Counted from the first letter of the stretch, positions 6,053 to 64,000 are shown. The stretch: DNA of 64,000 nucleotides from Cyanophora paradoxa CCMP329 (GCA_004431415.1 QPMI01000005.1:558001-622000); one strand, 5' to 3'. The notes: generated from the letters alone by a model not told the origin. Numbers and translations: made by a program.

Positions 6053-6254
6053 AATAACACACGTATACGTAGCTTCGGAAGTCGTAGCTTCTACGGGAAG
6101 GTAAATTCGATGGGGCAGCATATGCATGCGAGTACTCCAGCTCTCTGCCAGCTCTCCGCTGTACTTCAAACTGGGAACAGACGACACATAGGGGTGCATA
6201 AAGTGATAGAAATCACTGATCATGAGTCATAGAATAGCAAAAGGGGAAAGCCGG

Positions 6255-6625
6255 GGAGACCGAACCTCTTCTAAGTAACTTCCGAAGTTCTCTACTTGCA
6301 AATTGAGAGCACGCCGTGACGGGAAATTAAAATTAAATGCGCACTGGGTGAAGCTTGAGGCCCTGAGGGGTGAAAGGGGAAAAAGGCAAGGCCGGCGGCC
6401 CGCGCTAGCCGAAGCATATGGCGACGTATACGTAGGCTAGCCTAGTAGGGGCCGGGCCGGCGGGGCCGGCAGCGGATAGCGCCCATTGTCGATGGCCCAG
6501 TCACTGAGTGGATCGGAGAAGTGCGTGTCCGACCGTCGGACGGTCGGAGTAGTCCCGGGTCCTCCAGCACCGCCCAGGGGTCCGACGGTCGATGCCATGA
6601 TGAGGGGCCCCAGCGCTGGCCCCAT
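6255..6625 (-). pseudogene. Degenerate copy of the MED12 last-exon end and 3' flank
   Basis: Aligns with ~19670-19890 (aaggcaaggccggcggccc.gctagccga...tcctccagcaccg.ccaggggtc) but is interrupted by many 5-16-bp palindromic insertions. Confidence 0.75.
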
Positions 6626-6858
6626 TCTTATTCTAAGGTAGCCTAGTAGTAAAGAATTAGGTGTTGAAATCACGTGCACAGTTCACCGTCGCAACTTGGC
6701 AATCCGCATTCCATGATGGTCGAGTTCATGCTGGTTCAAATTCAATCAATAGCTTCGATTCCGTGCACGTGGGACAGACATTCGGACTGCAAAAAGAGAT
6801 TGAGACACCGGCGCGGCGCCGCACATACCTGCCTAGCCTATAGCTATACCTTCTATTG

Positions 6859-7156
6859 TGTTGCCGATAGGGTTTCCTAGCCGTTAGTGCTTCGTTTGCA
6901 CTTCGTTCGCAGTAGTACCGTGACTTGACCCGCGGCTTCTCGCGATTTCCTGAGTCACTGTACCCCTGTACGAAGATGCGACCCTAGCTACTTTTTCTGA
7001 CTCTAGCTTGATACTTTCCGGTAGCCGTGTCCTAGGGTACACAGTAGTCTGTGATTAGCAGCTTTCTCTTGCAACGTGACAGCCTGCTCGCCTGCTGCTG
7101 GTACGCTACGGGAAGGTTGCTAAGGTCTACTGGGACGTATAAAACCTCCTAAAACA
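6859..7156 (+). repeat. 5' LTR
   Basis: tgttgccgatag...cctcctaaaaca; no difference from 19328-19625 by eye. Confidence 0.97.
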
Positions 7157-7597
7157 TCCTCGCCGGGACCAGCGCACGCCAGCTGACGGACTTGCTGCGC
7201 ACGTCCGTTGGCCGCGAGCGTGAACCCGCTGGACTACGAGGAGGCGAACGCTTGACGCTTTCGGAGAGCACCGCTACTGGCGGACGCACTCCGCTGACCC
7301 GCCTCGCCGCCGACGCTTCCCTTCTCGAAGCTTCGGACGCGCCTCCGCCGCTCACTCGCGCAGTTGGGGAGCAGCCCGCCGTACCGCGGCATCGGCTAGC
7401 TCCCTGGCTCATCGTTCGTGCCGCGCGCGCATCGGGGATCGGTTGCGGCGGTCCGACTCGAACGACGGTCACGGGCCAGCTCGCGTACCGTACTGCGGTC
7501 GCGGCCCGACGGCAACGTCTACGTCGAACGACCGCGTGATGGAGCGCGAAGGCATGACTTCCGGCGAGATGGCCCGACCTTCCCCGGCCAACTGACA

Positions 7598-10500
7598 ATG
7601 CTCAACCGCACGGCCCGAGTCGCAGCGGCGCACGCCGAGGAGATCGCGCGCCGGCGGGTCATGGGCGCGGAGCCGCCGCAGGCGATCAAGATGGAGGACG
7701 GCAAGATGGGCCACACCACCGGGATTCCCGTCTCGCCCAACGGCGTCTTCCAACATCACAACGCCATCCGTTCGGCTACTCGCGGAGACAAGAAGTACTC
7801 CCTGCTGGACGACGGTTCGCAGGCGGCGTACCACGCCGTCGATTTCGGTGTCCGTTCGCTGCCGGCGGGACTAACGGAAGTCTACCGTTCGACGGTCGAG
7901 TTGCACCGGTCTCTCGTCGAAAACCTCGTCGACGCAGAGAGCGAGCTCACGAAGGCGAAGGCGACACTCGCGACGGCTACGGAGGAGGCGGCCAAGGAGG
8001 CGGCGCAGAAGGCCGTCCAGACGCGACAGGCCGTCGTCGACAAACTCCGGGCTGAGATGCCCTCGGACATTATTCGCGGCGTCCCCTCGTACATTAAGAG
8101 CCTCGTTCGCATGATTGACCCCGCTGAGCGCAAGCGTCTCAAGGAGGAGCTCATCGCGGCGTACGATGGCACTCAACTGGACCGTATTTTCGCCAACATC
8201 TGTGACCTCATCGCGTTCACTGACCTGCCGCGTGACAAGACGGGCCACACTGTGCAGGCGCTGGACGTCTATGACACGCTCGAGCAGCAGATCACGGAGC
8301 GCAAGACGCTACACCACGGCCTGTACTCCGGCCTCCCGTACGAGCAGCAGCGCAAGGCCAATTACGACCTGGCGCTGAATCTACTGCCGAAGCTGAAGAC
8401 GATGGCGCAGGACCTGTCGCCGACCGATGGGATGACTCCCAAGGACAAGGAGACCTGGTTTAACCTCTTCTGCACTCGTGCGCAGTCGCTCATTCGGGAG
8501 GCGGGCTTTCTGATTGTGACGACGACTGCTGGGGAGCCCTCGATTCCTACTGGGAATTCGAAGAAGGGCGCCAGCATCAACGCGGCGAACGTCGACGGGT
8601 ACGATTACGACAACGATGGCGACGACGGGTACACGGCGCCGTACAGCGGCACTCCGTACACCCCACCACCTTCGTCGTCCCCTGCGCCCTCGGCCCCGCA
8701 CTCGCAGTTACTCGGCTCTTCGGTCAATCTCGTCCACACGACGCCGTCGACCCCGCCGACAACCAATCCGATCTACCAATCCGCCCTCCCCGCGCCCCAG
8801 CAGCCGGCGCCGGGCCACAAGCCCGTCCCCGGCTGCTGCGACTGGCACGCACCGGTGCCCGGGAAGGACTACGGCAATCGCCCGCCCATCGGCCGCCCCT
8901 ACGATTACGCCCGTACGCAGACGGTCACGGCGATCCGTACGAGCCAGGGCTACCCGCGCGACGCGCGCCCGAGGGTGAGGCCCGGCACCAACGATCACAT
9001 TTGCACACGTTGTCGGTCGTTGGGAGCCGCGGACATCCATCACTACTCTGACGACTACCACGAGTGTTGCTCTCACCCGTACCGTCGGGAACTACTCAAA
9101 TTCGTCAACCAAGGCTGCCAAGACCCCGAGGTCCTGGCTGCGGCCCGCCTCTGCGGCCTCATCCCTGGCGGCCCGCAGGCACCGTCCTACAACGCGGTCC
9201 CCCGCCGTCGAACTCTGTACCCGTCGCTCCGGCGCAGCTACAAACCGCCCCTTGCAGGAACTGCGGCGAGCACGGCCACCACGCGTCGGCGTGCACGAAG
9301 CCGGTGCGCTGCTACAACTGCGGAGGGAGGGTCACACGCAGAACCGCTGCCCCAGTGGCAAGCGCCAGCACGACGGCGGTCCCCCACACGGTCCGTCCCC
9401 GAAGCGTGGCCCCGATGGTGGTGCTGGCGGCGCAGGAGGCGGCGGGCACCGTGGTGGCCATCGCGGCGGTGGCAGGGGCGGCTACCAGAGCGGCGGTGGA
9501 GGCGGCGGCCAAGGCGGGACGGGATCTAACGCCACCCTCCTCGGCAATCCCGCCCCGATGCAGCGCCCGACTGGCCCCGTTGTTGACGCGCCGTCTTCGC
9601 GCCCGACTGGCCCCGTTGTTGACGCGCCGTCTTCGCGCCCGGCTGGCCCCGTCACTGACGCGCTGCCTTCGCGCCCGACTGGCTCCGTTGCTGACGCGCC
9701 GTCTCCGCGCCCGACCGGCCCCATCGCTAACGCGCCGCCCCCGAACCCTCGCCCGACTGACCACGGAGACGCCGTGCAGTCCGGTGGTCCTGACTCGGGC
9801 CGGGAGACCGAGGCTACGACGGACAGCCTGGCCATGGTACCGATCGCTCCGGTGCAAACTGTCCCGATCACGCCGACGCAGCCCTCGGCATCGGACATCG
9901 CGCACTTCGTTCGGGACGTCAACGCCACGACGGCGACGCAGCCGGTAACGTCGGCGGCGGAGAGGACGGCCCCCGTCCCCGTCGCCATCCCCGTCGCTGA
10001 ACCCGCGTCGCCGTCCCCCTCGTCGACTCACGCGACCGGCCCGTCGTCGCCGGCCCCGTCTGACTTGTCGACAGAGATGGAAACGGGAAGCCGTACTGCG
10101 GCCGAGTCCCGTGTTCCAATTCGGTGTGCGCAGCCCCGGCGGGGCGTCACTGCCGGCAGTATCCGCGACCTCATCAACGCTGGCCTCCGCCGGCACGACC
10201 ACACTCGCATGTCCGCCGCCTTGGCTCCCGTCACGTCCAAGAAAACCCCGCTCTTCACTCGAAACTTTGGCCGTATGCACCGCCCGCGCCCGAACGCCAT
10301 CAATCCCGTCGCCCGCGTCGCAGTCACGAGGTCGCTCACCTTCGCGGCCGCCCCCTCGGCGAAGAGCACGAACTCCGACGCTGACTCTGTGCGGGAGCCG
10401 AAGACCCGGACGTACTGCGCCCTGGGGGACCCCGTCACAGAGTCGCCGATGGACACTGCACTCGGCCCGCTAACCTCCAAATCGAGCACCGACTCCCCCG

Positions 10501-13500
10501 CAGCCACCTCGCAGCAGGAGGGGAACGTCTCGAAGGGAAGTGGGCGGCCGACCCCGAACTACAAGGCCCCGCCCGCCAAGATGCCCGAAATCGACTCGCT
10601 ACGCCGGCCAATGCTGACCTGTGCGGCCCTCGAATCGTCCGATTCACGCACGTTGCACCGGCCGGACCCAGCCGCGGTGCCCCCAACACGATCCAGAACC
10701 GCTCGCACATCACTATCTTCGACGCGAACAACCGGAACACCTGGCAGCAGATCATCGCGGGCACGAGGAAACCCCCAAACGAGGCGGCGGGGCCGCACCC
10801 GTGCGGCCCCGACCCCAAGTACTTCCCGGTGTCCGTCAATGACTACACTGGCCCTGGGGGCGTCGTCGTGTCTCTGCGTCGTCGCGGGCCCACGGGCACC
10901 GCGCCTGCAACGCCCCCCGTCGTCCACCAGGTCCTGGGGTTCCCGCTTTCGGTACACACTTGGGTGTACGGAATCGCAGCGTACCTGGCGGCGGCAGTCA
11001 AGCTGCACGGTGCCTTGTCGTTCTTCCTCGAGCCCCTACCGGGGGAACTCGGGAACATCATCATCGACTACGTTCGTAGCCACGAGGATGAGCTGCACTT
11101 CCGCTTCACGGCTTCAGGCGAAGTGGCGCGCAGTGCCAAACTCGACAAATGGTACGAGGTCGAGTACCCTGACTGCGAACGCGTCGACCCGGCACATTTA
11201 ATCACAGCCTTCGAATCCCTACTGCACAAGGCAACCAACGACTGGTTGGCGGTCCAGATCAAGCACGAGACACCCCCGGCGGCTCGCGAAGATGTCGACA
11301 TGGATCGAAACCACTGCTGGCCCGTAGCATTCCGACTCCCGGATGGAGTCATCAACGCACTCAACGCCCAAGTCCGGGGCGCTGACTTCGATCCCACGAA
11401 CGATCCGTCACACCCGCATCGTCCCAGTGTCTATGACGTCAACGCGAGCGCAGTGCGCAACGCTATTATGGATTTCGAACAGCGATACGCCGACATACAC
11501 GAGCAATTCCGTCACGCCGAATATGGCAACTTCACATTCGATCCATTCTACAATGAATTCGGCGCCGCCATCTTCAGTCGCGAACCGCAGGCGCGGGCGC
11601 TACTCCACGGTTGGTTGGAACAATTCGTTTACAATCACGCCACCGTCGACGCGGCGACGAGGCGGCCCATCACGTTCACTAGCCGCGAAGCCTACCGGGC
11701 GGTACAGATCGTCGACGTCCTCCCCCTGCGTCACTCCCTGGGCGATCCGGACAACGACAGCCTCCTTCGTCAGATCCCCCACATTTACATTGGTCACGGC
11801 CCCCACGGCGCGCCTGTCGACCCGTACGAAGGCCGCACGCGCTTCACTAACATCATGAACTACATCACTACGACGAAGGCAGAGGAGTCGCGCGCGTACA
11901 TTTGGGACCCGCGCCTCGACGGCAAGATCAAGCTCGTGGGCACGGACGAGTACATTCGTCGGAACCCTGGGATTGCGCGCAAGCCCTTTGTCCGACCCTT
12001 CGTCGTCTGGTCGACCGACTTCAAGGATCTGCGCACCAACGAGCCGACGGGACTGGCACGCTTCGGTCACATCCAGGGTGTTGTCTTCAAGCCATCTGGC
12101 AGTAACAGGCCTCCGCGTCGTAGTCCTACGGGGACCGAGACGACGGGAACCTCTGACGGCGACGACTCCAGCTCGGACAGTGGTGGCTCCACCGCCGAGT
12201 CCGTAGCTCCATCGGAGACCCCGTCGGCCGGGACGCCGAGCCTAGCCTCGCGCGTGCAGTCGTCCGCGTTCGCCCCCCACGGCCTCCTTGGACCGCTCAC
12301 ACGGCAGCACACGTACACGATCGCATACAACGACCTCACTAATCCCAGGACGTCGACGGATCTCACGATGGGCTGCTGGCTCCTCTACTCTGGACGGGGA
12401 CCGGACTACGAGCGGATCACGTCCGCGCGACACCGTGCCTTCGAGGACCCTGAATTCGCTGCCAGTTATCACTTGTACGACTGGTCGCCGCTTCAGCGGT
12501 CTCACCAACTCAACGCCCACGCAATCCTGGAGACGCTCCACGAGATCGAGAACTTTCGGTGGGATTTCACAACCTCTCAGGGCCTGTCAGCCGACCTCGC
12601 TTTCACTCGCGCCTTGTTCACTCGGGCGGCCTTCATCCTCAATTCAATCGGCCTCGCGGCGTGGGACGTGGTCCTCCACAATGACTTCCGTAGTCATGAC
12701 GCTCAACGGACACGTTTCTACGAGCGGCACGTACTCCAACGCGACACGCGCCTCCGCCACGCTTGGCCCCAACTCGTCAAATATCTCCGGGCGTCTCTCT
12801 CGCGCCACCGCGAAGCCATCCCGTTCCGATCCCCCGGAGAGCCTGGCTACCGGCCGGCTGAACGACGGGATGGCGCAGCGGGGACCGAAGTTGACGCGAT
12901 CAACGAGATTCACTATGGCTGGCCCAGCAACCGCCACCTCAACAAGCTCGCAAACGCCGACTGCAAGCCCATCCTTGGCGTCGGATACTTTTCAGCCACA
13001 ATGCGCAATCACCGGCCCCCGCTGCGTCTGTCGGCAGCTCCCTGCAGGGCACGCCCATTCGCCGCGACGGACGTCCTCATGAACGTGCACAGGCGGACAA
13101 CCACGCGGAAGCGACCTCGCCTCAAGCGGACGGCACCGCTCCCGCCAGCCAGCGTCATCTCCGGTTCGACACCGTGCACACCGTATGAGCAGAGCTACCT
13201 CGCCTCGCTTCGCGTCTGCGCGGCACGCATGTTGGGATTTGACGACGTCGAGGACCCCCTTGACGTTCCCCTCTTCGGCGACGGCGGCCCGTCAGTACCA
13301 CACCCCATTGCGCGAATGACGGACACGAACCGCACGCTCAGAGAGCGCATCAACGACGGCCGAATCTGTGTCAACTTGCACATCGCCGCTATCGATCACC
13401 GACGACAAGTCCTTCAATACCTCCTCACCAAGGCATTGGTGGATACAGGAGCCGCTGCGGACGTACTCGACGGCAGTATCGCCGACAAACTGCCAGGCCT

Positions 13501-16500
13501 TCGCTACAGCAACGCTCCGTGCGTGCACCTCACCGGCTTTGGAACGGACATGACTGCCTATGCGCGCATCGCATTCATTGCAATTAAGGTTGGTCCGGTC
13601 ACAATTCCGCGGAAGGTCCTCGTCGTCGCGCCTGGTCTCATGGGCAACACTCCAATGCTACTCGGCCTCACAACGCTGGTGGCGCTCAACGCTCACATCG
13701 TGCTCGACCCAGCAAATTGGGGAATGACGATCACGTCGCCTGACTCCTCGGATGGCGAACGATTCCACGTCCCTTTTCGGCTACGGGCCAGCACGACGGC
13801 GGCGTTCTGGTCCGATTGGCGAAGGACATCACTGTACGGCCGGGTGAATCGCTCGTTCGATGTTACACGCCACAAACGACTTCGAACACGACTCTCGGCG
13901 CACCGGAAGTCCTCCTCACTCCGCCACCACTCCTCCTCGACGACGACGGCTTCGACGGAGCCGACGAAGTCGAATTCTTGGTGCCATACCAAATTCACCG
14001 CAACCCAGCACACGGCACGTTTTTCGTGCAGATCTGCAACCCTCACAGGCGGCCTGTCCGCCTGCGAGCCGGAACTGTGATTGCGGAGACTGAATTCGGG
14101 ACTTGGCCGGAGTCCGAATTCCGTCCACACGAGAATGTCGAGACCTACCCCAAGGGGTGTTACAGCTCCTGGACACCTCAACAACAACTGACATTCCCGA
14201 TCTCTTCCGTAGCCGCGCAAATCTATGAGAACTTCAAGCCTGTTGTCGTACCCCGACGCTCGCAACCACGGCGCTACATCTCCCGAGCCCGACGCCTCTA
14301 CCCGGAGGTCTACCACCGACGACCGCCCGAACCCAACTGCAAGGAGGGCGAGGCGGCGCATGTTGGCTCCGTCGATGCTGCTGCCGACATCCCGCTATCC
14401 CACGAGGCCAGCGAGCGTCTCATGTCGTACGTCGCACGTGTCGTCACCCCTTACACTGCTCGAACCGGCGATCACTTCAACGACAAGGAGCTCATGGAGC
14501 TGGCCAGCTTCTTCGAGCCTCACTTCGCCCGCTTCGACTCCGAGCCGATGCTGGTTGGCCCCGCAGCCGGCCCCACGGTGCCCATCGCGTCCGTCAATGC
14601 CGACGCTCGAATGGAGCCCCGTCGAGTGACACTGCGCCTCCTACAAAGCCATCGCCCGAGACCATCAAGGCGATGGTGGACGCCCTGTTGAAACCATCGG
14701 AGTCGAACCCCGACGCCCTTCCCGAGGATCGCACTCAACTCCAGAACCTTCTCACGCAACGCCAGCACTGCTTCGCCCAGAACATCAATCCACGCGAGCT
14801 CCTGAAGTACAAGCACAGCATCCGACTTCTGCCCGGCGTCCCCGCCAAGCACCTCCCGCTGTACACCGTCCCTCGCCGGCTCTCTCCGCCTGCGGAGAAG
14901 GCTGCGAAGGCGGAAATCGAGAAGCTGCTACGCGACGGTCTCATCGAGCCTTCGCAAGCTGGTTTCGGCAGCCCCGTGGTGCTGGCACCGAAGAAGGATG
15001 GCACGATGCGATTCTGCGTCGACTACAGGAAGCTCAATTCCCTCACGGAACGTGATGTCTTCCCGTTGCCACGCATTGAGGACCAATTGGAGCGCCTACA
15101 GGGTGCGTCCACGTTCTCGACTGGCGACGCAACGTCGGGTTTCTGGCAGTTGGAACTCGACGAGGAGTCACGTGACCTGACGACATTCATCGTCCCCTGG
15201 GGAATGTACAGGTGGAAAGTGACCCCTTTTGGTATCACGAACGGCCCAGCGGCGTTCTGTCGAGCCGTGACGTCAATTTTGGGCAACCTTTTGTCCACCT
15301 GCGTCGTGGCGTACGTCGATGACCTCACGGTCCACTCGCCGAACGTCAAACAACACCTTCTCGACCTGGAGGCCTTCTTCGCTGCGATCGACCGCGGTAA
15401 CCTCAAACTCAAGCCCAGCAAATGTCGTTTCATGGTGCGGGAAGTCGAGCTGCTCGGATTCCGTGTCAGCAGCGACGGCATTCGCATGGACCCCAAGAAG
15501 GTTGAGATCATCTCCAAGATCACGGCGAACGAACTCCAGACTGTCGAGCAACTCCGCAGTTTCCTCGGCCTCACGGGCTTCTACCGGCGCTTCGTACAGA
15601 GTTACGCGCGACGGGAACTTTCCCTGCGAGACCTCCTCACGGACGCACTACGAGCCGACCGGCTCAACTTGGTGTGGAATGACGAGGCTCTCGCTGCGTT
15701 GGACGACCTCAAGAAGGCGATGTGCGAGGACATTGTGCTGATGCTGCCCGACTTCACGAAGCCGTTCATCATTTACACGGACTGGAGCAAACGGGCCATG
15801 GGAGCGGTGCTCATGCAGGAGGACAAGGACGGCCGCGAGCGCCCGATCGCATTCATCAGTCGTACTCTGACAAACATGGAGCGCAAGTACCAATCACCAA
15901 CGGAGGGCGAATGCATTGCGGTACTCTGGGCGGTTAAGGTCTGGCACCACTACTTCGTCTGCGGCCACCCGTTCACGATCCGCACGGATCATTCGGCGTT
16001 GCAATGGTTGAAGACACAGGAGCTGGCGAACAACAAGACGCTTGGGCGCGCGGCCATCGCCCTCAACCACTACAACTACACTATCGAGTACCGCAACGGG
16101 CGGTCGAACGTCGTTGCGGACTGCTGCTCTCGCCTTGCGGAGACGCACGCAGTGTACAAGCCTGGCGGCGCTGACGGCACTGACATCACGACTTCGATAC
16201 CAGACGGCGCTCACGGGTTCGGTGTGCCCGATGCGGGAGACTACGACGATCCACGCGAACTCTACCGCGTCGCCATCCACCGCACCTCCTCGGCCCTGCA
16301 ACATACTCTGGACGGGCCGGCGTGGATCCCTACTGGGGATAGACGCCGCGCCACCACGCGACCCGAGCACCTTGCCCCGGCGCCACCGCGCCGAGACCGC
16401 GACGACCCTCAGACTTCACGGCGACGTCCAAGGTCGTTGACGCCCGACACTCAGCGAGTGCGTGACATCGTCGAGAACGGCGGCCTGGAAGACGTGGAGT

Positions 16501-19119
16501 CCCAGATCACGCTGGAACGGCTCCACGAGAACGGCGCCCTCTCTGCCCCCGACGTCGTACCCATGGAAGTTGACACGCCTGCACCGGCCGCAGCGGCAGA
16601 CGAGGCGGGCGCGACGGCCCCTCCTGCACGGCGACGCCGCGGGGTGACGAACCTCGAGCATACACTCGACGGCGCGGCCTGGCTACCGGCCGAGGGTCGC
16701 CGCCGCCGACTTCAAGTTCGAGGACAGGAGAGCTCCGCTGACGGGCTTCAAGCTCGAGGACGGGAGAGCTCGGCCCGGAGGCCTCGGTCTCAGTCACCGG
16801 AAGGAGGGGAGGGGGTACAGACGAGGAGAGCGAGCCGTCGCTACCCCGTCCATCTTTGCGAGGCTTCGATCGTCAAGCAGCTGACCGCACGCTACGCGAC
16901 TCTGTGGAACGGGCACGACGCCGGGCCCTCACGGATGACGGCCAATCTTCGCAGTCCTCGGCGTCCGACGGAACGTCGAACTCAAGACGGAGCACGGCTT
17001 GGAGTGTCCCGCGCCAATACCAGCGACGGCTTGAAAAGGACTACGCTGACCGCCTCGCCAGTGATCGCGACAGACGTTCGCGTGCGGCCCGAGATCTGCA
17101 CGAAGCCTCGCGGGAGAGGACGGCGACGACGCTCGAACGGCGACGCCAACTGGCAGAGATGGGCCGTACCCCGTCTGAGATCGACGCGCTCGTACCCCTG
17201 CCCTCTGTTCGGAACCGAACCCCGGAGGAGCGGCGCAGACGGCGACAATCCCGCAAGGCGCTGAACGCCAAGGCATGCCCCGTACCGCGGGTGAAGCCTC
17301 CCAAGGGCAAGAATTCACGGCAGTCTCGATATGCCATTGCGCCCCCGTCGCATCTCGACGTTGCTGACGAGGAAGAGTACATGCACTTCCTGCAGCAAGA
17401 ACGTGACCTCGGTCGTCCGCGACCTGATCCCACTTCTAGCAGCGCTATCGCCCCGCTGGACGAAGGTGAAGGCGCCCAGAATGAGCCGACACACGTTCGC
17501 TTGCCGCGTGGCACCGTTGTCATGGACACCTGGAGCGAGGGCCCCCGCCCCCTCGTTGACGTTCCTCCGCCACCGACGATCCGTGAACTTGTTTCCGATG
17601 GGACCGCGGTCATCATGGCTCAGGCTCGTGACCCTCTTTGCCAGATGGTGTTCGCACTTCTTCGCGAGAAGGAGAACCTGGCGCGCTGTCACTCCCACTA
17701 CACTGCTGGTGAACGTGACCCGGAGGTGCTTGGGAGCTGCATTCTCTGCAAGTCTGCACGCGATCGCTTCGCTCGTGAAGCTACTCAGTACACGATCGAT
17801 GAGCAAGATACCGTACTGCGGTTGCCCTTGCTCCCCACTATGCGGCCTCAGATCGTTGTACCCCCAGAGTGGCGGGAGAAGATTGTTCACGCTTACCACG
17901 ATGACTGGGCTCACCGTGGTGCCCCCATTGTTGCTCGGCGCATCGCCTCACGGTTTTGGTGGCCGGGCATGACGACTGCTGTCCATCGCTACGTGAAGAC
18001 GTGCCGACACTGTCAGTTTGCCAAGGCTCACAAGAAGCCGAAGTCACAATTCACTGTGATCGAGTCTGAGCATCCTGGCGACTTGCGTCAAGCCGATCAC
18101 TTCCCTATGGCGCCCTCTGAGAACGGTCGACTTCACCGTTTCACACTTGTGCACATTGACGTCGACGCTTTTACCAAGTACCCTGAGATTTTGATGCTGA
18201 CGGAGGCTGATGGTCGTGCCTGTGAGTGGGCTGCACAAACTGTGTACGCGAATCACGGCCCTTGCAAGCGGTATCTCACGGATAACGCCAAGGTCTTCAC
18301 GCCTACTAGTCTCTGGGGCAAATTCTGGACTCGCCAGGGTACTCGGTTGATTTACGCTCCCACGTCCCACCAGTCCACGAACGGCGGTGCTGAGCGGCTT
18401 GGTGGCATTTACAAGCGCTTGGTGTATGCTCTTTGCGATGAGAACGGGGAGGACAATTCCCATTGGCCTTTCTATCATTATCGCGTGCTCTTCGCTCTCC
18501 GGACCACGATTCACGCTGCCACTGGTTTTTCACCCGCCGCTCTGCACTTTGGACGAGAATTGATGTTGCCTGGCGATCTTCGTCTCGACCTCACCCTGCG
18601 CGAACCTCACGAAGATCCCGTTTCTCTCTACGATTACGCTTTGTCGGTCGCTCGAGCCGCCCGCGACCAAATCTCTGCCGTCCGAGAACACCGCAAACTT
18701 TACAACAAGAAGTTGCTTCGCTATGGCACTGGCCGTGAGCCGCATCGTGTTTTCAAGCCTGGTGACAAAGTGTTGTGCTGGATTATCAGCGCGAAGACCA
18801 GTAACGTCAAGCGCACTGGGCCTCGCAATGGTTGGACTGGCCCTTACACTGTCACTGAGGTTCACTCTCACGGTCTTTTGTACACTGTCCGAGGCGATGA
18901 CACTTCACTGGTGTATCGCTCGCGCGAGGTTCTCATGCACGTTGATCTCATGATCGCTTTTCACGAGCGTCCTGCCAATGTTCTCGCTCCCGCAAAGCCG
19001 GTCGCCCTCGCAAGGCCCCCGTGCCTGTGCCGCCCGATCATGAGGTCCCCGTGCCTCCGCCACCTGCCGTTGATCCCGATTCACTTTCCGATGATGACAC
19101 GACGGATGACGAGTCTTGA
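7598..19119 (+). CDS. Gag-Pol polyprotein, broken by about seven -1 frameshifts in this assembly
   Basis: Zinc knuckles CRNCGEHGHHASAC and CYNCGG(E)GHTQNRC (~9250-9350). Protease ALVDTGAA (~13435). RT RFCVDYRKLN / PFGITNGPA / YVDD (~15000-15330). RNase H IIYTDWSKRAMGAVL...TDHSAL...NVVADCCSR (~15765-16135). Integrase H-H-C-C (HDDWAH..CRHC) and D,D,E (DHF, TDNA, GGAER) at ~17890-18400. Confidence 0.9.
9564..9743 (+). repeat. 36-bp coding minisatellite x5 (RPTGPVVDAPSS) in the Gag C-terminal region
   Basis: cgcccgactggccccgttgttgacgcgccgtcttcg and variants start at 9564, 9600, 9636, 9672 and 9708, contiguous with no spacers. Confidence 0.9.
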
Positions 19120-19327
19120 ATCACAGCCCGTACTGCGGTTTACCGGATTCACTTCCGTTGTCGATGACGTGCCCTTCACTGGGATGTGGCTTGCGAGTTT
19201 CGGGAATTCTCTCTTGGCGCTGGGTCAGCGGCTGATCACTGCTGCCTGGTTTGCCCTCAACCAAATGCGCAGCTCTACATCTCTTCTGATCCAGCCGCGT
19301 GGAAGCGTCTGTGAGGACCTGGAGAGC

Positions 19328-19625
19328 TGTTGCCGATAGGGTTTCCTAGCCGTTAGTGCTTCGTTTGCACTTCGTTCGCAGTAGTACCGTGACTTGACCC
19401 GCGGCTTCTCGCGATTTCCTGAGTCACTGTACCCCTGTACGAAGATGCGACCCTAGCTACTTTTTCTGACTCTAGCTTGATACTTTCCGGTAGCCGTGTC
19501 CTAGGGTACACAGTAGTCTGTGATTAGCAGCTTTCTCTTGCAACGTGACAGCCTGCTCGCCTGCTGCTGGTACGCTACGGGAAGGTTGCTAAGGTCTACT
19601 GGGACGTATAAAACCTCCTAAAACA
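19328..19625 (+). repeat. 3' LTR
   Basis: Identical to the 5' LTR; followed by the TSD ATTG. Confidence 0.97.
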
Positions 19626-19765
19626 ATTGCTGAGATGGGGAGTCCTTTGCGACGACCGTGTCCACTCTGACGAACTTCTCTACTTGGCTTGAAAACTGGC
19701 CGTTCATAGAATGGGAAAATGCGCAGTGGAGAAGAAGGAGCGAAAGGCAAGGCCGGCGGCCCGTG

Positions 19766-43471: not shown

Positions 43472-43512
<41 letters not shown>

Positions 43513-45635: not shown

Positions 45636-47332
45636 GGCCACCACGTGCACGGAGCTCTCGTCTTGCACTGCAATCCGACCACCGGCGCGCGGCCGCTGCC
45701 AACGCCCGGCGCTGGCTGAATCCGCGGCCGGAGAGTCCGAGCGCTCCGGCATAGATCTGCTCTCGCGGCCTCCGGTCGCTGCAGTTGATCAGAAGTGGAT
45801 CGCAAAATGCTCGACACGCGAGGATGCACGTACGCAAGGGGCTGGCCCGCCTCCATCCTCACGATCAGGCTCCAGCGCAACAGGATCATGAGGCATCAGC
45901 GCAACATCGCCTGAGAGGCTCAGCTGAGGCTCTGTGGCGGATTCTACCGAAGTACTGGGAAGCTCGAAGAGGTGCCCTTTCGCTTCTGTCGGCAACTTGG
46001 GAGGGCCCTGCAGGCTGCTGGGTCGCGATGCGCGGAATCACAGACGGACAGAGCCGCAGATGCCGCAATGTCGTCTGGACTGGTTGCAGACCGCGAGCGC
46101 CGCGCGCCGCGCCCGCACTAGGCTGAGCCGAAACAGCCTTCCCGCGGGGATCGAACCCGGGTCGAGTAGAACGGCTGCTGTGGAGCCGCAAGAAATCCGC
46201 GGCCCGGTAGCGACCTGCAATAGCGATAAGCTCGCGCAATCGCAACGTGCAACCTTTTATCTGCCGCAATCGCCGCAACTCCGCAACTGCCGCGCGTCCC
46301 ACGGTCGGCCTCGTGCAGGACCGCACACGTCCTCGTCGGATCTAGAGGAAGACTCAGGTGCGTGCACTGCGGCATGGCTTGGGGCATGCTCCCCCTCCCC
46401 GCCGCGCCTCTGATCCTCGCGCTGCCGCGCGCAGCGGCCGGCGTTTCTACCACCGAGCCGCCGGCTTGAGCTCATCCCGTTCGAGATCTAGAGGCGCTCG
46501 CGTGGTTGAGCGATGCGTCTGCTGCTCCGTCGCACTGCGGGCTCCTCGCGCGGCGCCAGCTGGCGTGTGCGGGCAGGCATGCTGACGAGTGCAGCCGGTA
46601 GCGTGAGCGGGGTCCCGCGTCGGTGCGCCCACCCGGAGCTGGGCGGCACGGCGGCTTTGGATCCAGACCACCGGCTGACCACGCGCCCGCCCCGCCGCCG
46701 CCGCAGGCTTCTTCGCCCCCGGCGTGGCCCGGGCGCGGCGGCTGGAGAAGGCGGGGTGCAGCCGGCGACGGCGGTGGCTGGCGACAAGCGGCCGGCGGCG
46801 TAGTGCAGCGATGGAACCACGCACGGCTTGCCAGCGTAGAGCAAACGGTCAGGACGGCCGGATACAGCCGATGACAAGCTTGCGGAGGACGACCGGGGCT
46901 CGCTGGCGCGCCGTGCCCGCCGCCCCCTGGGGACCGGTGCCGCCCGCCGCCCTCACCGGCAGGGAACTCCGGGGCGCCTCGGCTGAAGAAGGCGGGGAGG
47001 CGGCACGCGGCGCGCGGCGCGCGGCGGGCCGCGCCACTCAGCGGCGGCGGGCAATGCCGCGCGGTGCGTGGCGGGCCCTGCCGCTCAGGCGGCGCAGCGG
47101 CTGCGGCCCTGCGGGTGGCGGCAGCGCGCGGGCTCTCCCGCGCGCCGCGCGCCGCCCGCACCGCCCCCGGCGCCGCCCACCGCCCGCCGCTTCTCAGCAC
47201 CGGGCAGCGGCGGCTGGCAGCGGGCGGTGTGCGCGGCGCGCGGCGGCCCTGCCGGTGCGGCCCTGCCGCCCGCCGGCTGGGGCGGCGTGCAGTGAGCGGC
47301 CGCGGCAGCACAGCGGCGAACGCTGCAATATC

Positions 47333-47808
47333 GCCGCTCGGCCTTGGCCTCCTTCCTCCTCTTCTCCATCCTGCAGGCAAGCCGTACTCTCCCGCCCCCC
47401 CCCCCCCCCCCCCCCCGCACCCCACCCCCACCCCACCCCACCCCCAACCCCACCCCCCCCCCCCCCGCCCCCCCACCTTCCTCCGCCCACTCCCCTCCCC
47501 TCCCCCCCCTCCCCCTCGGCGCCGATGCGGCCTTCCTCCAGGTACCCCCTACCGTCGCCTCCCCCTCCCGCCCCAGCCCCCCCCCCCCCCCCCAGCCCCT
47601 CCCCTCCCCACCTCTCTCGCCCCTCCCCCGCCCGCCCGCCCGCTGGTCCAGAGTCTCACCCGTCGGTCACACCGGGTCGCAGCGGTTCGGCTTTGGTCGA
47701 CTACCACCGGAAGCAGCGCTTCGTGGCCCAGTGGTGGACTACCACCGGAAGCAGTGGCAGCTCGGGAACGTCGCCTACAGGCACGGCCTCTTCTCCCGGC
47801 TCCGAGGC
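47333..47808 (+). pseudogene. Degenerate KAT14 3' fragment
   Basis: ASFLLFSILQA and VDYHRKQWQLGNVAYRHGLFSRLR match 29045-29395; internal duplication of gactaccaccggaagcag. Confidence 0.75.
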
Positions 47809-47888
47809 TTCTGGTGGCCACCCGCTCAGCGGCTCCTCTCTTATATCCCGATCCTGCCAGGCGGCGCCACCGTGTACTTGCTATGGAA

Positions 47889-51530: not shown

Positions 51531-52238
51531 GGCCGGCCCGGCCTGGCTCGGGCGGCCTCCCGAAAGGGCCAGCTACAGCTTTCTGAGCCCGCGACTTGTC
51601 TCTGGATCTACAGGTAGGAGCTAGTCGCTGTGTATTCTTCAAGGCTTGAAGAACATGCAGAAAGGCCCAAAACAAGCGCACGCGAACTGCAACTAGCTAA
51701 AAGAGCGACTGCAACTGGCTCTCGAGCTCAGTCACTGAAAGCAGAGCTCTATCTAGATCTAGATGCACGCGCATCTGTCTTTGAGTTCAAATGCCTCGTG
51801 ATCAAATGCAAGTTTCAAGTTTCAATAAATCTCTCTCAATGAAATAGAAACGATGTAAGCAAAAAGGATGTACATTCGCAAACTGAAATCTAGAGCTCGA
51901 TCCTGAAGAGAACCGATCAAGCTAAAGAATTTGCAATTGCAGCAAACAAGTATTATGCAGTCGAGGGCCCGCGCTGGTGAGCGTGGGCCCGCCCAATGAA
52001 AGAAAGAGAATCCCTACCCTCCTATGCAGCCTGGCAATGTCCCTACGATAATTTACAGTCCGACGGTCGGCCGCGCGGCCGAGGGCGGCGCGCCGCGGAA
52101 CGGGAACTGGAAGCTCTACATCTGCTCTACATCTGCGGCCGCGCGTCAGCTAGTTCGCGGCGAGGCGAGGCGGGGCGAGGCAAGGCGAGGCGAGGCGCGG
52201 CGCGGCGGCTTCGCACCAAATCTCTAACAGATGATCTT

Positions 52239-56897: not shown

Positions 56898-57680
56898 TTA
56901 GGGTACGGCTTTGGCTTGGAGGAGGACAGAGGCGCGCGAGGGGCGGCGAGGGGACAGGCTGCGCATGGTCGCAGCGGCCGCGGCCGCCGGGAAAGCTCGG
57001 GACGCGGGTCGCGTCCGCGTCAGCTGCTGCCCTGCTGCTGCTGCTGCTGCGCGAGCTGCTGCTCCTGCAGGCGCCTCTTCTCGAGCTCCTGTCTTCTCCA
57101 GGCCTCGCGCTGCATGTCCCGGATGACGCCCTGGTGCATCCGCTGCGCGCGCGTCACGGCCAAGCGCCGGAGCGGCAGCGTCCGCGGCGGGCGGCGGCTC
57201 GACGAACCTCTCGGTCCGCCTTCTGGCTGACGTGAACGTACCAGACGATAGCTGCGGCAGGGGATCACTCGCGGCGCGGATGGCGTGGCGCGTGCGGCGA
57301 GGCGCACCGGTGCAAGCCAGGCCGCACAGAGCGGCGCCGGCATACATCCTCCGCTTCGAGATGGGGAACACGACGTGGTCCGGCGGCGGCGGCATTGCGC
57401 GGGCTTGCGGTCCTGTGCGCGAAGTCGTACCCGGACACCGGGGTTGGCTTCAGCCCCGGGTACCGGCAGAGTGGTTGAAAGAAAAGTCCTCTATCGCCTC
57501 AACTTGAGCGGGTAAACGCGGCTGGGTACCGTGACTAACCGTAACTAGTAAGCGGAGCGAGCTCGAGCTCTCTGCAGGCTGCAGCTCATCGGGTCCGCGC
57601 AAGCCTGACGTCGACCCTGTAGACTGTAGGAGGCGCTTAAGCTTCTGCATCGATATGCCGGCGGCGCCCGGCGCGGGCAT
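56898..57680 (-). CDS. Small hypothetical protein with a charged/Q-rich coiled coil
   Basis: Putative exons MPAPGAAGISMQKLKRLLQSTG / VEAIEDFSFNHS / PDHVVFPISKRR / ...REAWRRQELEKRRLQEQQLAQQQ; boundaries uncertain. Confidence 0.35.
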
Positions 57681-58091
57681 GCTCTGCTGATGATGCGCAT
57701 GCGCAGTGACTCTTAGGCTCTTCTAGCGTCAACTTGGAGGCTTAAGTTGGAGCTAGTAACGATATCTCAGAGTCGAGTAACGCCGGTCGGGCGAGCCTTG
57801 GAGCGCGCGGCGCGCCGAGCTCGAAGATTTGTCCGGCTGCCGCGCAGTCCGACGGTCGCGCCCGGCGGCCCTCCGAGACTCCGATCGCGCGAGCGGCTCC
57901 CCCGCGACCGGGCCGGGAGGTCCGACGGTCACTGCAGCTGGGCCAGATCTCAGCTGGCAGAGCGTATACGTAGATATCGCGAAGCTGCAGCTGCAGGGCG
58001 CCTCATGATCAGGCCGCCTAGGCCTCAGGGCCTGCAGCTGCATGCGCAGCTGAACCGGGCCGCAGGCTTATAATAGATAGCTTGAAATATA

Positions 58092-61000
58092 ATGCCCTCC
58101 GCTCCCTACAGCACCATGGCCATCGCGAGCGTGTCCGCGCTGGACGCCGATCGCGACAGGCTGCATCTCTCGCCCAGCGACGCCGCCGACTTTGAGCGGC
58201 TCCAGGCGCTCGAGCAGGCGGCGTTCGGGCCGGGGGGCCCAGCTGCAGGATCGCTGGCGCCCCCCAAGCTGAAGAAGAAGCGCTCGAGCCTGTCCGCGCT
58301 GCACCTGCGGAACATTTTCCAGGCGAGCTCGGGCCAGCCCCGGTGATATACATCAGGAGGCGACGCCAAATGCCTCCGGCCCTAGTCTAAGCGTTCGCGT
58401 GCGCATACGCAGCCTCGCACATGGCAGCTTGTCAACAACAACCGGCGGGCGAGCGCCGCGGTCCTGGCCGGCCTGGAGGTGCACCCCGCCGTCGAGAAGA
58501 ACGGGCCCATCATCGGGTGGCTCCAGCAGTACCTCTCGCCCCACGCGCCCTTCCGCACCGTGTGAGTAAATACTATTCACGTAACTTATCTGCTGCGCGT
58601 TCGGACCTTGAATTAATAAATTCGCGCCCGCCCCGCCCCACATTCCGGTCTGGCCCGCAGGTGGGGCATCCTAATGGCTATCTGCATCCTGTACAGGTGA
58701 GCCCCGCGGCCCGCGCGCACGACACTTGTGTATACGTCGCCCCGCCGCGGGCCTTAGGCCTGCAGCTGCCCTTTTGGCTCCCTCTTGAAACCTAGGAACG
58801 CCCCCTCCCCCCCCCCCCCTCCCCCAAACGTGCACCCCCCTCATCCCTTCCCCCGGTCCCCCCCCCCTCCCACCGCTCCGGATCGATATCCCTCCCCCAG
58901 ATGCACGTGCACCCCTTCTCCCAGCCCTTCCCCCTAGGCCTCTTTCCTCCCCTCCCCTAGGCCTACGCACCCCGGGCAAGGCCCGGCCCCAACCCCTCGA
59001 ATCGACACCCTCCCCCCCCCCACCCCACCCCCACCCACCCCCACCTTCCCTCCGGATCTGGATCCCTCCTCCTCCTCCTCCTCCCCCAGCCCACTACATA
59101 CGCCTCCCGGCTCCCTCCCTTCTGAAAAACACGTCCGGTCCCCCGCCCCCAGCATTGCGATGGTTCCATTCGCTTCGGCGTTCGACTACTACGCCCATCG
59201 GTGAGAGCGCCGCGCATTTTCAGCTTATAATTAATTAGCTTCGCTTTGCTTAAGCTTCAGCTTTGTCTTTGAAATTAGAATATTTAATGCATGCGCAGCT
59301 CTGATATCGATCATTAACGGGGCGGGGCGGGGCAGGCCGGGCGGCCTGGTTGTATGGGACCTGATGGTCGACATCGCTTTCCTCATTGACGTCGCCCGTG
59401 CGCTTTCAACAGTTTCGACCGACTCGCTCTTTCACTTTTAAGAACGCTTAAATTTACTTATCCGCTCCGGATCCGGATCCGATCCGGGACACGGGGCCGG
59501 GCCGGGGTACAGTTCACTTCGTGTTCCCGTACGAGGACCGCAGCGCGAAGGTCACCCGCCTTGAGTACTCCCTCCGCCCCATCGGTACCCCCCCCCCCTT
59601 CCGAAGGCCTTCGAATATTAATTCTCCGCCACCCTAGCCCCCCCCCCTCCCCCCCCCCCCCCCCCACCCCTTTTTCCCCCACCCGGGGCCGACGCGGCGC
59701 CGGCAGCGCGGCGCTACGCCCTCGCGTGGTTCTTCCCCGACATCGTCTCCTCCATCCCCGTGCGCCTCTACGAGGCAGCATTCTATGAGTTCACTTGCGC
59801 TCGAGCCTCGGAGTTCGCACGGCGTTATATATAATATAAAATATTAACGCTGCACGCTCGTGATCGCGCTGACCCGCCCCCTCCCCCCCCCGCCCCCCCC
59901 CCCCCCCCCCACACACACACCCTTCCACGCTCGCGCGTTCGAACATCACCACTGCATCCCTGATCCGCCCCGCGCCACACCACGCAAGATCGACCTCATT
60001 CGCTTGGACGAGCAGCAGACGGGCGTGATCCGCATCATAAAAATCTTCAGGTGCTGCAGTGCCGCCCCCCCGAATCCAACAAATTAAATAAACCAAACGC
60101 GTTGCCACGTTGTGCTTTGTGCTCACTTGTTTTAAGGCTGCTTCGCTTCGCTCGGGTCTTGAGGCTCAAACGCCTGCTGGACCATATCGCAAAGGGCCGC
60201 CTGGTTCGTTTCTTTATATGGCCGCCCGCTGAATATTAATCAGTGACGTGGGCTCGTTTGACCGCATACGTTAACGATATCCTCCGGATCCCCGCGCGCA
60301 CAGGTCTCCCAGATGGAGTCCCGGGTGCACCTGTACCCCGGCACTGGACGCCTCCTCTTCCTCCTTATCTGGATCGGCCTGATCGCCCATTGGTTCTGCT
60401 GCTTTCAGGTAAAACAAAGCTCTCTGAATCTCCATCCCCCTCCTTTCTCTCCGCCCCCTCTGCCCCGGGCCGCCCTCCCGCCCCCCCGGGGCCCGCCCCC
60501 CCTCCCCTCCACCCCCCTTCCCCCCCCCCCCCCCCCCCGCCCCCCTTCGCCAACCCCCACCCGTCCAGTTCTTCGTCTCCTCGTTCGACGGCTTCGATCC
60601 GCATTCATGGTACCCTTCAAGAAAAACCTCTACCGCAAATTAAACCTTCTACCCCCTACTCACCCAGCCACGTGCCTTCCCCTCGCACAGGGTCGTGACG
60701 CACGGGTTGGACAAGGCTCACGTATCGGAGCAGTACCTGAACTGGTACCCCCGCCGCGCCGCGCGCCCGCCTATCGATAGGCTTGCAATTGCGCATGCGC
60801 CCCGTCGCTCACGTTCACGTGCACGTCTTAGCTTGTACTGGGTCCTGGTGCGCCCTTACCCCCACACCCCCATGGCCTGTGCCCTGCGTGCAATTACTTG
60901 ACCCCGCGGCCGCCGGCCCCGGTCCTTTCGGCAGACAACGCTGGCCACTGTCGGTGCGTCCCCTTTCTCGGACCCCTCGCCGCATCTCCCGCCCGGCCGA

Positions 61001-64000
61001 CACTTAAGCTTGGCTCACCCGCGCGCCGCTCTTTGTGCAGGGTACGGAGACATAAGCCCCGGCTCCAACCGTGAAAAGGTGCATTTAATTTACTACGACT
61101 AAGTTACAGCCCGGCCGCCCCAGCTGCAGCCGTCGGTGTCCGGCTCTCGCGGCCGCCCCTCCGCAGCCCACCCGGGCCGGGTCTAGATCTAAGCGCCCCT
61201 GGCCCCGCCCTGCAGGCCGTCACGATTTTCATGTTCCTTGTCGGCGCCACTGTCTTTGCCTTGTGCGTACCGCCCGTCCCCAATTTATTACTGAGCTTCA
61301 AGGCTTCTCCCCGCTCATCCCACGTGCACCCGTACCACCCCGGGCCCACCTCGCAGTCTCATCGGAGCCGTGTGCCCCGCCCACCGCCGAGCCGCGCCGC
61401 CCGCCCACCCGGCGGCCGGCCCACCGTTACCCCCCCTTGCGTAGGTCACGGGCCTGGCCGCCTCTCTCGACCGATCCGTGCGCTCATGATCAGCGGCTCC
61501 GCCCTGGCCTGCTCTAGATCCAAACCCCTACGCCCCGCCGGCTCATGATCACCTCCATGGGCCCGGCCCTTGCACGTGCGCAGTCTGCTCTGTACTGGGA
61601 GCGCCTGGACGCCCTCTCGTCCTTCATGCGGTGCGCGTTCTAATTACTTCACTTCAAGTTATAATAATGAAAGAGCGGTTGCACTTGAGAGCGCTATTGG
61701 ACGAGAGCGCTACTAGAAATAAATAAAAGGAGCCAATTGAATATTTAACATTCATTGCATCATAGAGTTGACGCGCACTCGGTGACTAGTACTGCGGCGT
61801 GCATCATAAATCATAAGAGAACGCGCATGCGCAATTCAAGATAATTACAGATTAAAGCACAGAGATAAAGGCAGAGCTAGCTATAGATCAATTGCATTAA
61901 TCCGAACTCGAGTCCTCGACTCGGCGAGCTCCTCGCATCTGACGCTGAAGCTTCGTTACCCCTTCCCTCGCGCGCCTCTGAGTGTCGGCATGGACAGGTA
62001 TCACCGAGTGCCCTTCCACCTCTCGGCCCGCATCAAAACCTTCTACCAGCACTTCCTCGTGCGCTCTTTCATTTTCTAGCTTTTACTTTCAAAGTTTTCC
62101 GCGGATACGAAATTTTTCGAAGCTCATTTCTGAAGTTGTACGTCTTCGATTCTTAGCCCGGCCTGCTATATATAGAAACACTTGGCAGGATGAGCTCTGA
62201 AATTAAATCTGCACGCTAAATTTCTAGAAGCTCTGGAGCTCCGAGGATCTTGCCTCTCTCAAAGTAGGCGTCGCTCACCGCTCGCCGCGCGGGGCGGCGT
62301 GCCGGCGCCGGCAGCCCGGGGCGCTGGCGTTCAACGAGGGGGCCCTCCTCGGCGACCTCTCCGCCTCGCTGCGCACCGAGCTTGCCATCTTCCGCCACAA
62401 GGACCTCATCCTGAAGGTCCGGGGGCTATTTATATTTAATAGAAACGCAATACATAGCTTGTATAAGGCGACAATCTCAGCTCCAAGTTCGTCGTTAATT
62501 ATACAATACTCACTTGGGACGCCCCCGGGCGCAGAGCGCCATGTTCAAGGTGCCTCTCCCTCTCCAAACAGATTTGAAATCCATGCTCCATCCGTCCGCG
62601 CTGAACCCCCCCCCTTCTCCCCCCCCCCACATACCAGCGCGTCTACGACCGACGCTTCATTGAGCGGTTCGCGATCGCCCCCCCCCCCCCCCCCCCCCCC
62701 CCGCCCCCCGGCGGCCGGCCCGCCCCCGGGGTCCCAAGTTCCCTATTTAGCTGACACGTACATGTACATGTACAGCCTTGCCCTTATTCCTTAATTCCTG
62801 AATTGCGTTTCCGGATCCTTTCCACTTCTAAGTTTATAAAAAGGACATGTACAGCCTCGAGCTTGCGATTGCTATCGCCCCCCGGCCCGCCGTGCCGGCA
62901 TGCCTCCGCGCACGGGCCGCCCGTTTCTAGATCTTGGCACGCCCTCCTGATTAAGCGGCGCCGCGCACGCGCGCTGGCGCCCGCAGGGTGGTGGTGCTGC
63001 TGAAGCCGTGCTCCTTCGGCCCCGGGGACCAGATCTTCTTCCAGGGCGAGCGCGGCTCCGCCATGTACTTCATGTGCGCGTGTACCCCTAGCTATCATAG
63101 TATAGGGTCCTGCCAGGCTGCGCCAGCCAGCTGCAGCCGCCCTCTCGGAAAAATAAATAAACAGCATCTTCCGGCTAGCTATAGGTATTCGAGCTGACGG
63201 TCCCTGGCCCCTGGCCCCTCGCAGCTCGCAGGGGAAGGTCCGGATCGCGGTGGGCCCTGAAGACAGCGCCGCGACCGTCGCGACCCTGTCGGAGGGCAAC
63301 TTCTTCGGCGAGGTGCCTTCATCATAATAAAGAAAAGCCCGCTTCTAGAAGCCCTACAGTGCCGCGGCCATAGAAAAGCCCTTGTTTTTCAACAAATCAA
63401 ATTTAATAGTTGAGTGGCCTCGAAAGGAGGCCAGGGTATAACCGCCGCGGGGCCGCCTCAGATTGCGGCGCTGACGGACTCTGTGCGGACGGCGCACGCG
63501 ATCGCCATCGACTTCTGCGGTGAGGCAATAATTATATTAATGGCTTTACTAAGTTAGATCCAGATTAATACCAGGAAATGTCTAGATTGATGGCCGCCCT
63601 CTTATTAATACTACTACTATGATATTCAATGATTCCCGCCCTTGCCTGGCTGCTGCTCACGATCCGATCTGACGGAGCCCGCAGAGCTGGTGGCGCTGAA
63701 CAAGGGGGACCTGGAGACGGTCCTCGAGGACTTTCCCTATGTGCGCCGCCGCCGCTCCGGGCCCGACCCGCGGCCGCGCGCTGCGCTTGAATGAGTAATA
63801 CCGCCCCGCGTCAAATTAAAGAGAGACGCGGAGCTTGCCGAGGGGGCTAGAGGGCATTCAAACCTTAACTTCAGCTTCTTAAAGACAAAATGTGCGAAAT
63901 AGGAATTATAGGATCAATACAAGATTGAAGCGCGCTCAGCGGCCGTCAAAGAAATTCGCGCTTTCAGTTTTCCATCAGAGTCCGACCCGCCCGCGCAGAT
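58092..64000 (+). CDS. Voltage-gated K+ channel with cyclic-nucleotide-binding domain (KCNH/HCN/plant-Shaker-like); runs off the window
   Basis: DLMVDIAFLIDV, WFFPDIVSSIP, S4 RLLRFARVLRLKRL, S5 LIAHWFCCF, pore TTLATV-GYGDISP (GYGD at ~61041), CNBD FGPGDQIFFQGERGSAMYF, LSEGNFFGE/IAAL..RTA. Confidence 0.9.

Follow-up and report, generated by a model that had tools for sequence, protein, structure and literature searches.

What process writes the same short word repeatedly into the non-coding DNA of a genome? The question is raised by a 64,000-nucleotide stretch (the window) of Cyanophora paradoxa contig tig00000042. An earlier note on this DNA had described a recurrent 11-mer, in which a triplet X is followed by C, by its own reverse complement, by G and again by the triplet (X-C-rc(X)-G-X), and had proposed that it is the excision footprint of a transposon with a 3-bp TSD. 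The C. paradoxa genome comprises 99.94 Mb with 67.6% GC, short introns and 29.4% repeats; the genome paper describes little repeat expansion, and palindromes or footprints go unmentioned in it (PMC6704402). DNA transposons exist in this organism (PMC12344493). An F-box ORF of the window matches the EukProt proteins tig00000042_g155xx of C. paradoxa. The window contains five F-box genes, which are accompanied by co-duplicated pieces of neighbour genes, as well as Med12, a kinase, a MenG-type methyltransferase, an intact Ty3/gypsy element and a gene at 58343..64000 that we read as cyclic-nucleotide-gated-channel-like.

Two classes of stereotyped insertion

A scan for X-C-rc(X)-G-X with X = 3 nt found 42 matches in the 64-kb window. 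The expectation from 100 block-wise dinucleotide shuffles, which served for the scan of all spacer pairs, is 6.5±2.6 with a maximum of 13. All coordinates and triplets listed previously were recovered, and the full scan gave about twice as many. The chance expectation had been put at about one match, which is too low because the window has 67% GC. When triplets composed only of G and C were omitted, 37 matches were observed versus 1.1 expected; the five G/C-only matches (21559, 22513, 29626, 57860 and 60484) are probably due to chance. The all-pairs scan gave C/G as the only strong peak. None of the other pairs was comparably enriched, the next being G/G (13 vs 7.2) and C/A (6 vs 2.4). The C/G excess in the window is limited to k=3, where k is the length of X (k=2, 81 vs 62 in shuffles; k=4, 0), and the motif is symmetric on both strands; the fixed 3-nt unit and the strand symmetry noted before are therefore borne out. 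The 42 matches represent 30 different triplets, and their sites have no strong target consensus besides an A/T middle base and a mild C..G flank bias. Decayed copies with one mismatch are also in excess (18 vs 5.5).

The same analysis uncovered a second class, X-rc(X)-X, which is absent from the earlier note. In the comparison that gave 37 vs 1.1 for the first class, this motif reached 127 matches vs 13.6 expected, making it about three times as common. We refer to the two classes by their net gain in length as +8 and +6. One-mismatch copies of the +6 class are in excess as well (147 vs 71). Neighbouring variants in the window behaved differently. Hybrids with one spacer (+7) are at background (7 vs 4.2 and 4 vs 3.6), as are X-CG-X remnants, and versions with two-base spacers amount to 14 vs 12.4. 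Without spacers, k=4 gave 4 matches vs 2.4 and k=5 gave none; versions with k=5, 6 or 8 show no enrichment in the window. The raw window has an excess at k=2 (153 vs 95), which is small once the scars are removed and consists mostly of TA runs. Simple tandem duplications of 3 bp show no excess (31 vs 25±4.5).

The two classes differ in the middle base of X, which is A or T in 27 of the 37 +8 scars and in 63 of the 127 +6 scars (p=0.015). This difference, together with the absence of hybrids, suggests two enzymes, families or element types. Scars of both classes are nested in each other in both directions (6213 and 61482; 61915 and 63089) and also within their own class. This mutual nesting indicates that both processes were active over the same period.

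The scars are insertions

The sites on which the following analysis relies are listed here, with the strand where one applies.

2663..2671: +6 scar (TCA) in a duplicated gene fragment; 0 mismatches in 21 nt to the empty site of the paralogue
6213..6229: +8 scar (TCA) whose inverted triplet holds a nested +6 scar
6280..6290: +8 scar (TTC); empty site in the paralogue at ~19672
6283..6613, minus strand: dead duplicate of the Med12 last exon/3' region
6311..6368: +8 scars ACG (6311) and AGG (6358); paralogue alignment ambiguous here
6426..6448: +6 scar GTA (6426) and +8 scar TAG (6438); paralogue has neither
6499..6509: +8 scar (AGT)
6527..6545: +8 scar GAC (6531) nested in +8 scar GTC (6527); net +16 relative to the paralogue
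6580..6602: adjacent +8 scars GTC (6580) and ATG (6592); both sites empty in two paralogues, 1 mismatch in 25 nt
6639..6702: +8 scars TAG (6639) and CAA (6692)
6859..19625, plus strand: young Ty3/gypsy LTR retrotransposon with identical 298-bp LTRs and a 4-bp TSD
19670..19890, minus strand: intact Med12 3' end, the reference with empty sites
29678..29749: intergenic cluster of interleaved +8 scars TTC (29679), GTT (29686) and CTC (29731), plus one +6 scar
31573..31581: in-frame +6 scar in an F-box gene exon (model P0004); site empty in three paralogues
31800..32320: intergenic hot spot with 7 +8 and 10 +6 scars, 22% of bases; members at 31885, 31983, 32023, 32078, 32137 and in tandem at 32226/32234, and the paralogue-verified +6 scar at 31809
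35007..35017: +8 scar (GTC)
38720..38728: +6 scar in an F-box gene intron; paralogues empty
39182..39190: in-frame +6 scar in an F-box gene exon (model P0007); site empty in the closest paralogue
40528..40536: +6 scar (GAC) in a dead Med12 fragment; site empty in two paralogues
46364..46374: +8 scar (GCA)
47724..47734: +8 scar (TGG) with flanks G..T in a pseudogene fragment; site empty in two paralogues
47824..47834: +8 scar (GCT)
51637..52068: intergenic +8 scars CTT (51637) and GTC (52058), plus three +6 matches
57500..58100: hot spot upstream of the channel-like gene with 4 +8 and 12 +6 scars, 17% of bases; members at 57847, 57920 and 58023, and a multiply nested chain at 58017-58052
58343..64000: introns of the channel-like gene, with +8 scars at 59803, 61296, 61917, 62087, 63093, 63110, 63546 and 63624 and nested scars at 61482, 61915 and 63089

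Duplicated sequences in the window allowed us to compare scars with their empty sites. Fourteen insertions, seven of each class, were verified in this way; the paralogues have the plain triplet. In the dead Med12 duplicate at 6283..6613, alignment to the intact copy revealed at least eight scar insertions vs 21 substitutions; a third copy of the Med12 3' end lies near 37040-37300. Exact +8 insertions relative to the Med12 paralogue occur at 6280, 6438, 6580 and 6592. Positions 6527/6531 account for the nested +16, and one +6 lies at 6426. The other verified sites are in other duplicates (+8 at 47724; +6 at 2663, 31573, 31809, 38720, 39182 and 40528), where the closest paralogue differs from the empty site at 0-4 of 21 nt. 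Further paralogues, where they can be aligned, are likewise empty, so that the change is polarised as a gain. The predicted net insertion of 8 bp is thus what the paralogues show, with empty sites and a gain of exactly 8 bp. None of the paralogues in the window has an element still inserted at a scar site. Other dead copies have far fewer scars than 6283..6613, so scar density is uneven.

Two candidates from this region were not accepted. A stretch at ~6481-6492 with CAT...ATG ends, possibly an 11-bp remnant, is inseparable from overlapping scars, and a nested TGG match at 6493 is doubtful as a scar, with part of the same sequence being held by the paralogues.

These comparisons also bear on the idea that the motifs arose as errors of sequencing or assembly, or that they are a regulatory motif under selection. 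The data come from a single assembly and the matches cluster near gene ends, as this explanation would have it. However, the scars are copy-specific among paralogues and nest both ways, and exons and the LTR element are spared. The excess of one-mismatch versions means that scars age, which counts against an assembly artefact; 30 triplets among 42 matches are unlike a protein-binding site. We consider this explanation highly improbable. Both insertion classes are real.

Scars accumulate in non-coding DNA

The 37 +8 scars that are not G/C-only are absent from the LTR element (12.8 kb), the Med12 region (7 kb) and the exons of the F-box and channel-like genes (6.1 kb). In the channel-like gene all eight +8 scars (p=0.08) and 36 of 38 +6 scars (p=0.0006) are outside exons, the exon coordinates being read by eye with 6 of 26 boundaries off by a base or two. 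This agrees with the previous observation that the 11-mers avoid exons. F-box exons tolerate in-frame +6 scars (31573, 39182); frame-shifting scars are purged from exons. The young LTR element is an internal negative control, with no +8 scar and five +6 matches in its 12.8 kb. Neither this result nor the presence of decayed scars bears out the present-day activity that the earlier note implied in calling the transposon very active.

The scars had also been suggested to make up a large share of the non-coding DNA, and this holds for the regions sampled. Four intergenic spacers shrink by 16-22% when perfect scars are removed, and 7.8 kb of spacers and introns, a sample picked after the data were seen and not a genome average, shrink by 9.5%. 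The excess amounts to ~150 scars in 64 kb; if the window were typical, this would extrapolate to ~2x10^5 events genome-wide. The hottest site has taken at least eight events in 330 bp. Such a very large implied number of events, set against the little repeat expansion of the genome paper, counts against a transposon as the source. In Chlamydomonas lines, 6-12% of all mutations are structural, and 22-38% of the structural ones are due to TEs (PMC9977147). A TE contribution of a few percent to the mutation rate thus has a precedent, which the hot spots in the window exceed.

Eight control loci from other eukaryotes with a total of 187 kb (four green algal assemblies, two plants, a spider and one metagenome contig) had 2 +8 matches vs ~2.3 expected and at most a mild excess of the +6 motif (55 vs ~37).

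The C and G spacers do not come from the flanks

The base composition around the scars distinguishes between several sources of the spacers. Among the 42 +8 matches, C precedes the scar in 17 and G follows it in 18, and both are present in 7, which corresponds to the GC background. Only one of the six independent verified sites has a C-X-G empty site; the verified empty sites include C-TTC-T, G-GTC-G, G-ATG-A and G-TGG-T. The C and G spacers are therefore not derived from the flanks, as the transposon proposal had assumed in taking them from elsewhere, and this excludes hAT-type loops and largely also local template switching for the +8 class.

One reading affected by this result is a hAT-type excision of an element that has a 5-bp TSD, targets strictly C-NNN-G and is released by a nick in the flank, one base away from the border. 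It would also give a net gain of 8 bp with single-base spacers, and Ac/Ds footprints are indeed palindromes that have the complement of the flanking base at their centre (PMC5873905). It requires C..G at every scar, however, and is refuted by the flank counts and by the verified empty sites; we attach almost no credence to it.

Short-range template switching during replication (four-point model) could also make an inverted triplet. The process is a known source of short inverted copies in genomes (PMC5453318), and it could formally yield X-rc(X)-X, and the +8 product where the site is C-X-G. But for a +8 scar the copied fragment must be rc(C-X-G), and the C and G have no local template in five of the six verified sites. 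Neither the fixed 3-nt unit, evident from the counts for k=4 and k=5, nor the absence from the eight control loci is explained. Template switching is largely refuted for the +8 class, and as an overall explanation we regard it as very unlikely.

On either strand the added base is a C immediately 3' of the flank. This C would be left behind by a first nick one base into an element whose first base is C.

A proposed model of hairpin excision

A direct duplication of X with an inversion bounded exactly by X calls for a staggered cut with fill-in and, in addition, for a fold-back. Both would be provided by an element that inserts with a 3-bp TSD and is then excised through hairpins. We therefore think it likely that the scars are the excision footprints of cut-and-paste DDE transposons that have a 3-bp TSD and form hairpins on the flanks. 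Such hairpins are known from hAT, Transib, RAG and MULE, in which opening and joining are left to the host (PMC5499845). The transferred strand is cut at the element end, and the position of the nick on the non-transferred strand varies (PMC6900584).

The proposed sequence of events is as follows. Insertion of the element would duplicate the target triplet X. For excision the non-transferred strand would be nicked, and its 3'-OH would attack the other strand at the element end, as in the chemistry of hAT, Transib, RAG and MULE, whereby each flank would be closed as a hairpin. A host nuclease would then open each hairpin ~2-4 nt from its tip. With the same triplet on both flanks, the overhangs would share the microhomology rc(X) and could be joined, a logic that we simulated. 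A first nick at the border would give X-rc(X)-X; a first nick one base inside an element with 5'-C...G-3' ends would keep the terminal C as a loop and give X-C-rc(X)-G-X. The +6 class thus implies a second cleavage geometry, and two element types, one per scar class, are implied. The lack of enrichment of plain 3-bp duplications is expected if the ends are always hairpinned. Our literature search found no description of a nick one base inside the element combined with a flank hairpin.

In a two-hairpin simulation, which is a toy model and not evidence, a TSD of 3 and an opening at 2-4 nt gave the canonical product in 73-97% (+8) and 48-89% (+6) of the joins; with a TSD of 8 it was 0-40%. This difference would explain why scars are uniform here and hAT footprints are varied. 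The original proposal that hairpins open 3 nt away is workable, but this exactness is not needed, since the model succeeds over 2-4 nt.

A similar product could arise without any element, if a host or domesticated nuclease made breaks with a 3-nt stagger and the repair added a non-templated C or nothing, snapped back or jumped template, and rejoined the ends; the end chemistry would resemble that of Pol theta or a reverse transcriptase. The searches of the window, which found no element, agree with this scheme, as do the extreme local density with clusters in gene-proximal spacers and introns and the spacer itself, a 3' end plus C on both strands that terminal addition could provide. However, the stagger would have to be 3 nt every time and be filled in, both ends would invariably have to receive a single C, and the fold-back would have to span zero or one base; we know of no polymerase snap-back with such requirements. 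Independent chemistry at the two ends should also give +7 hybrids, which are absent, and +3 duplications, the main product expected of a staggered break, are unenriched. We judge this scheme to be unlikely.

Search for the element and comparison with known systems

No intact element had been seen in the window before, and our searches led to the same result. A Pfam scan of 124 window ORFs outside the LTR element detected no transposase domain, the Tnp2/Transposase_21 type of CACTA/EnSpm included; only Med12, kinase and PET117 were matched, and intron-split or short ORFs could escape such a scan. A search of the window for TIRs with a 3-bp TSD gave 66 candidates vs 47-71 in shuffles. Self-BLAST of the window returned only gene duplicates and no MITE-like dispersed repeat, and an Rfam search of the window gave no match.

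Among known transposons a family of the CMCT clade (CACTA/EnSpm, Chapaev, Plavaka-like) is a plausible best candidate for the +8 class. It leads because CMCT elements have CA..TG ends and TSDs of 2-5 bp, with 3 bp in EnSpm (PMC12730594; PMC3193017). Members of CACTA/CMCT (Chapaev, Mirage, Plavaka) combine a 3-bp TSD and 5'-C...G-3' ends with small footprints (PMC3193017, PMC12730594, 10.1101/342816). The scars match this group in the 3-nt duplicated unit, although here it is known from scars and not from an element, and of CACTA-type CA(C)...(G)TG ends the +8 scar would record only the first base (C/G). X-C-rc(X)-G-X was not found for CACTA in our literature search, in which older plant CACTA work is thinly covered. 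To our knowledge the biochemistry of the 3-bp-TSD class of CACTA/CMCT has never been reconstituted.

The scars resemble the products of hAT elements (Ac/Ds, Hermes) in the flank hairpins, the palindromic P-nucleotides round a single loop base and the repair by microhomology (PMC5873905, PMC2921059). They differ in that the loop base of hAT elements complements the flanking base, whereas here it is an invariant C or missing, and in that the hAT TSD is 8 bp (5-7 in some lineages) and the unit here is 3 bp. In addition, hAT footprints are heterogeneous, with 28 types among 128 in Candida; here one product dominates. Transib and RAG have TSDs of 5 bp and MULEs of 8-9 bp. Their cut at the border and loop-less flank hairpin, described for Transib, RAG and the MULE Muta1, correspond to the +6 class (PMC5499845, PMC6900584). 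Muta1 excision is mostly precise, unlike the scars, and the Transib/RAG/MULE literature that we consulted reports no stereotyped scar that shapes a genome. PIF/Harbinger (mPing) shares the 3-bp TSD but has a TTA/TAA target and excises precisely; Tc1/mariner leaves element-end bases in its footprint and no inverted copy of the flank (PMC4561436). Neither fits 30 different triplets with an inversion. Together, the footprint works like that of flank-hairpin excision and fails the tests for hAT, PIF and, for +8, template switching.

Implications

Neither motif was found in our literature search as a genome-scale signature or in C. paradoxa; older work is thinly covered there, and a small-scale precedent in plant CACTA is possible. 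The footprints of transposons are usually heterogeneous and become unrecognisable after the element is lost. Here they are two exact, searchable words, so that a single genome is enough to count, date and map a history of insertion and excision, and any other genome can be searched with the same regular expressions. The scars are moreover a record of cleavage chemistry; from the +8 class, the first nick is predicted to lie one base within the element. They may reveal a transposase lineage with an undescribed geometry, a flank hairpin with the terminal base of the element as its loop. If this is true, such a lineage would be a mutational force that rivals point substitution in non-coding DNA. 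As footprints the scars would represent a directional, expansion-biased mutation process, which has provided about one tenth of the sampled non-coding DNA and two-residue in-frame insertions in exons, and which bears on the growth of introns and spacers in a key early-branching archaeplastid.

Possible triplet preference and imperfect insertions

The commonest triplet among the +8 scars (X-C-rc(X)-G-X, where X is 3 nt) is GTC/GAC, which was found at 6580, 35007, 52058, 57847, 57920 and 6527; a decayed copy lies near 37345. Because this triplet is the most frequent and its scars are often directly followed by G, there is a hint of a preferred target. No +8 scars were found in L006, a control metagenome contig from ENA with 60% GC. 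The sister +6 motif, X-rc(X)-X, was mildly in excess there (16 vs 6); its matches are mainly CAG/GCA triplets and the excess is probably codon-related.

Comparison with paralogues, the duplicated segments within the window, revealed the following imperfect insertions:

5025: +5, a one-sided palindrome
6552: +7, a scar without one base
37221: +9
36026: a +6 variant
2083: +17

These insertions look like non-canonical products of hairpin repair. Palindromes of 6-8 bp are still enriched once the scars are removed. At 34517-34600 there is a partly tandemly repeated fold-back, in which a loop of 4 nt separates the arms of a perfect 20-bp inverted repeat; it may be what is left of an element, or else the product of a long P-nucleotide event.

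Other repeats and local duplication

The window contains these further features:

6859-19625: intact Ty3/gypsy element, 12.8 kb, with identical 298-bp LTRs and a 4-bp TSD
7418-9529 and 9252-11201: its two large upstream ORFs
9527-9748: 36-bp tandem repeat within it
40572-40647: GATA microsatellite joining a dead Med12 fragment to the end of the kinase gene
42239-42765: degenerate ~50-bp repeats within one of the kinase gene's introns, a long one
1-1870, 4065-6050, 29820-31660, 37430-39260 and 47900-49930: five F-box genes, a tandem family

The Ty3/gypsy element is unusually long. Its upstream ORFs had no Pfam matches, and other proteins of C. paradoxa include relatives of the integrase. In the genes at 40800-45000, 50500-51500 and 54400-56500, GTAC with a run of C after it appears strikingly common, in exons and introns alike.

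Behind several of the F-box copies lies a duplicated piece of a nearby gene, either the 3' end of Med12 or part of the gene at ~27500-29520, and this arrangement suggests repeated local segmental duplication.
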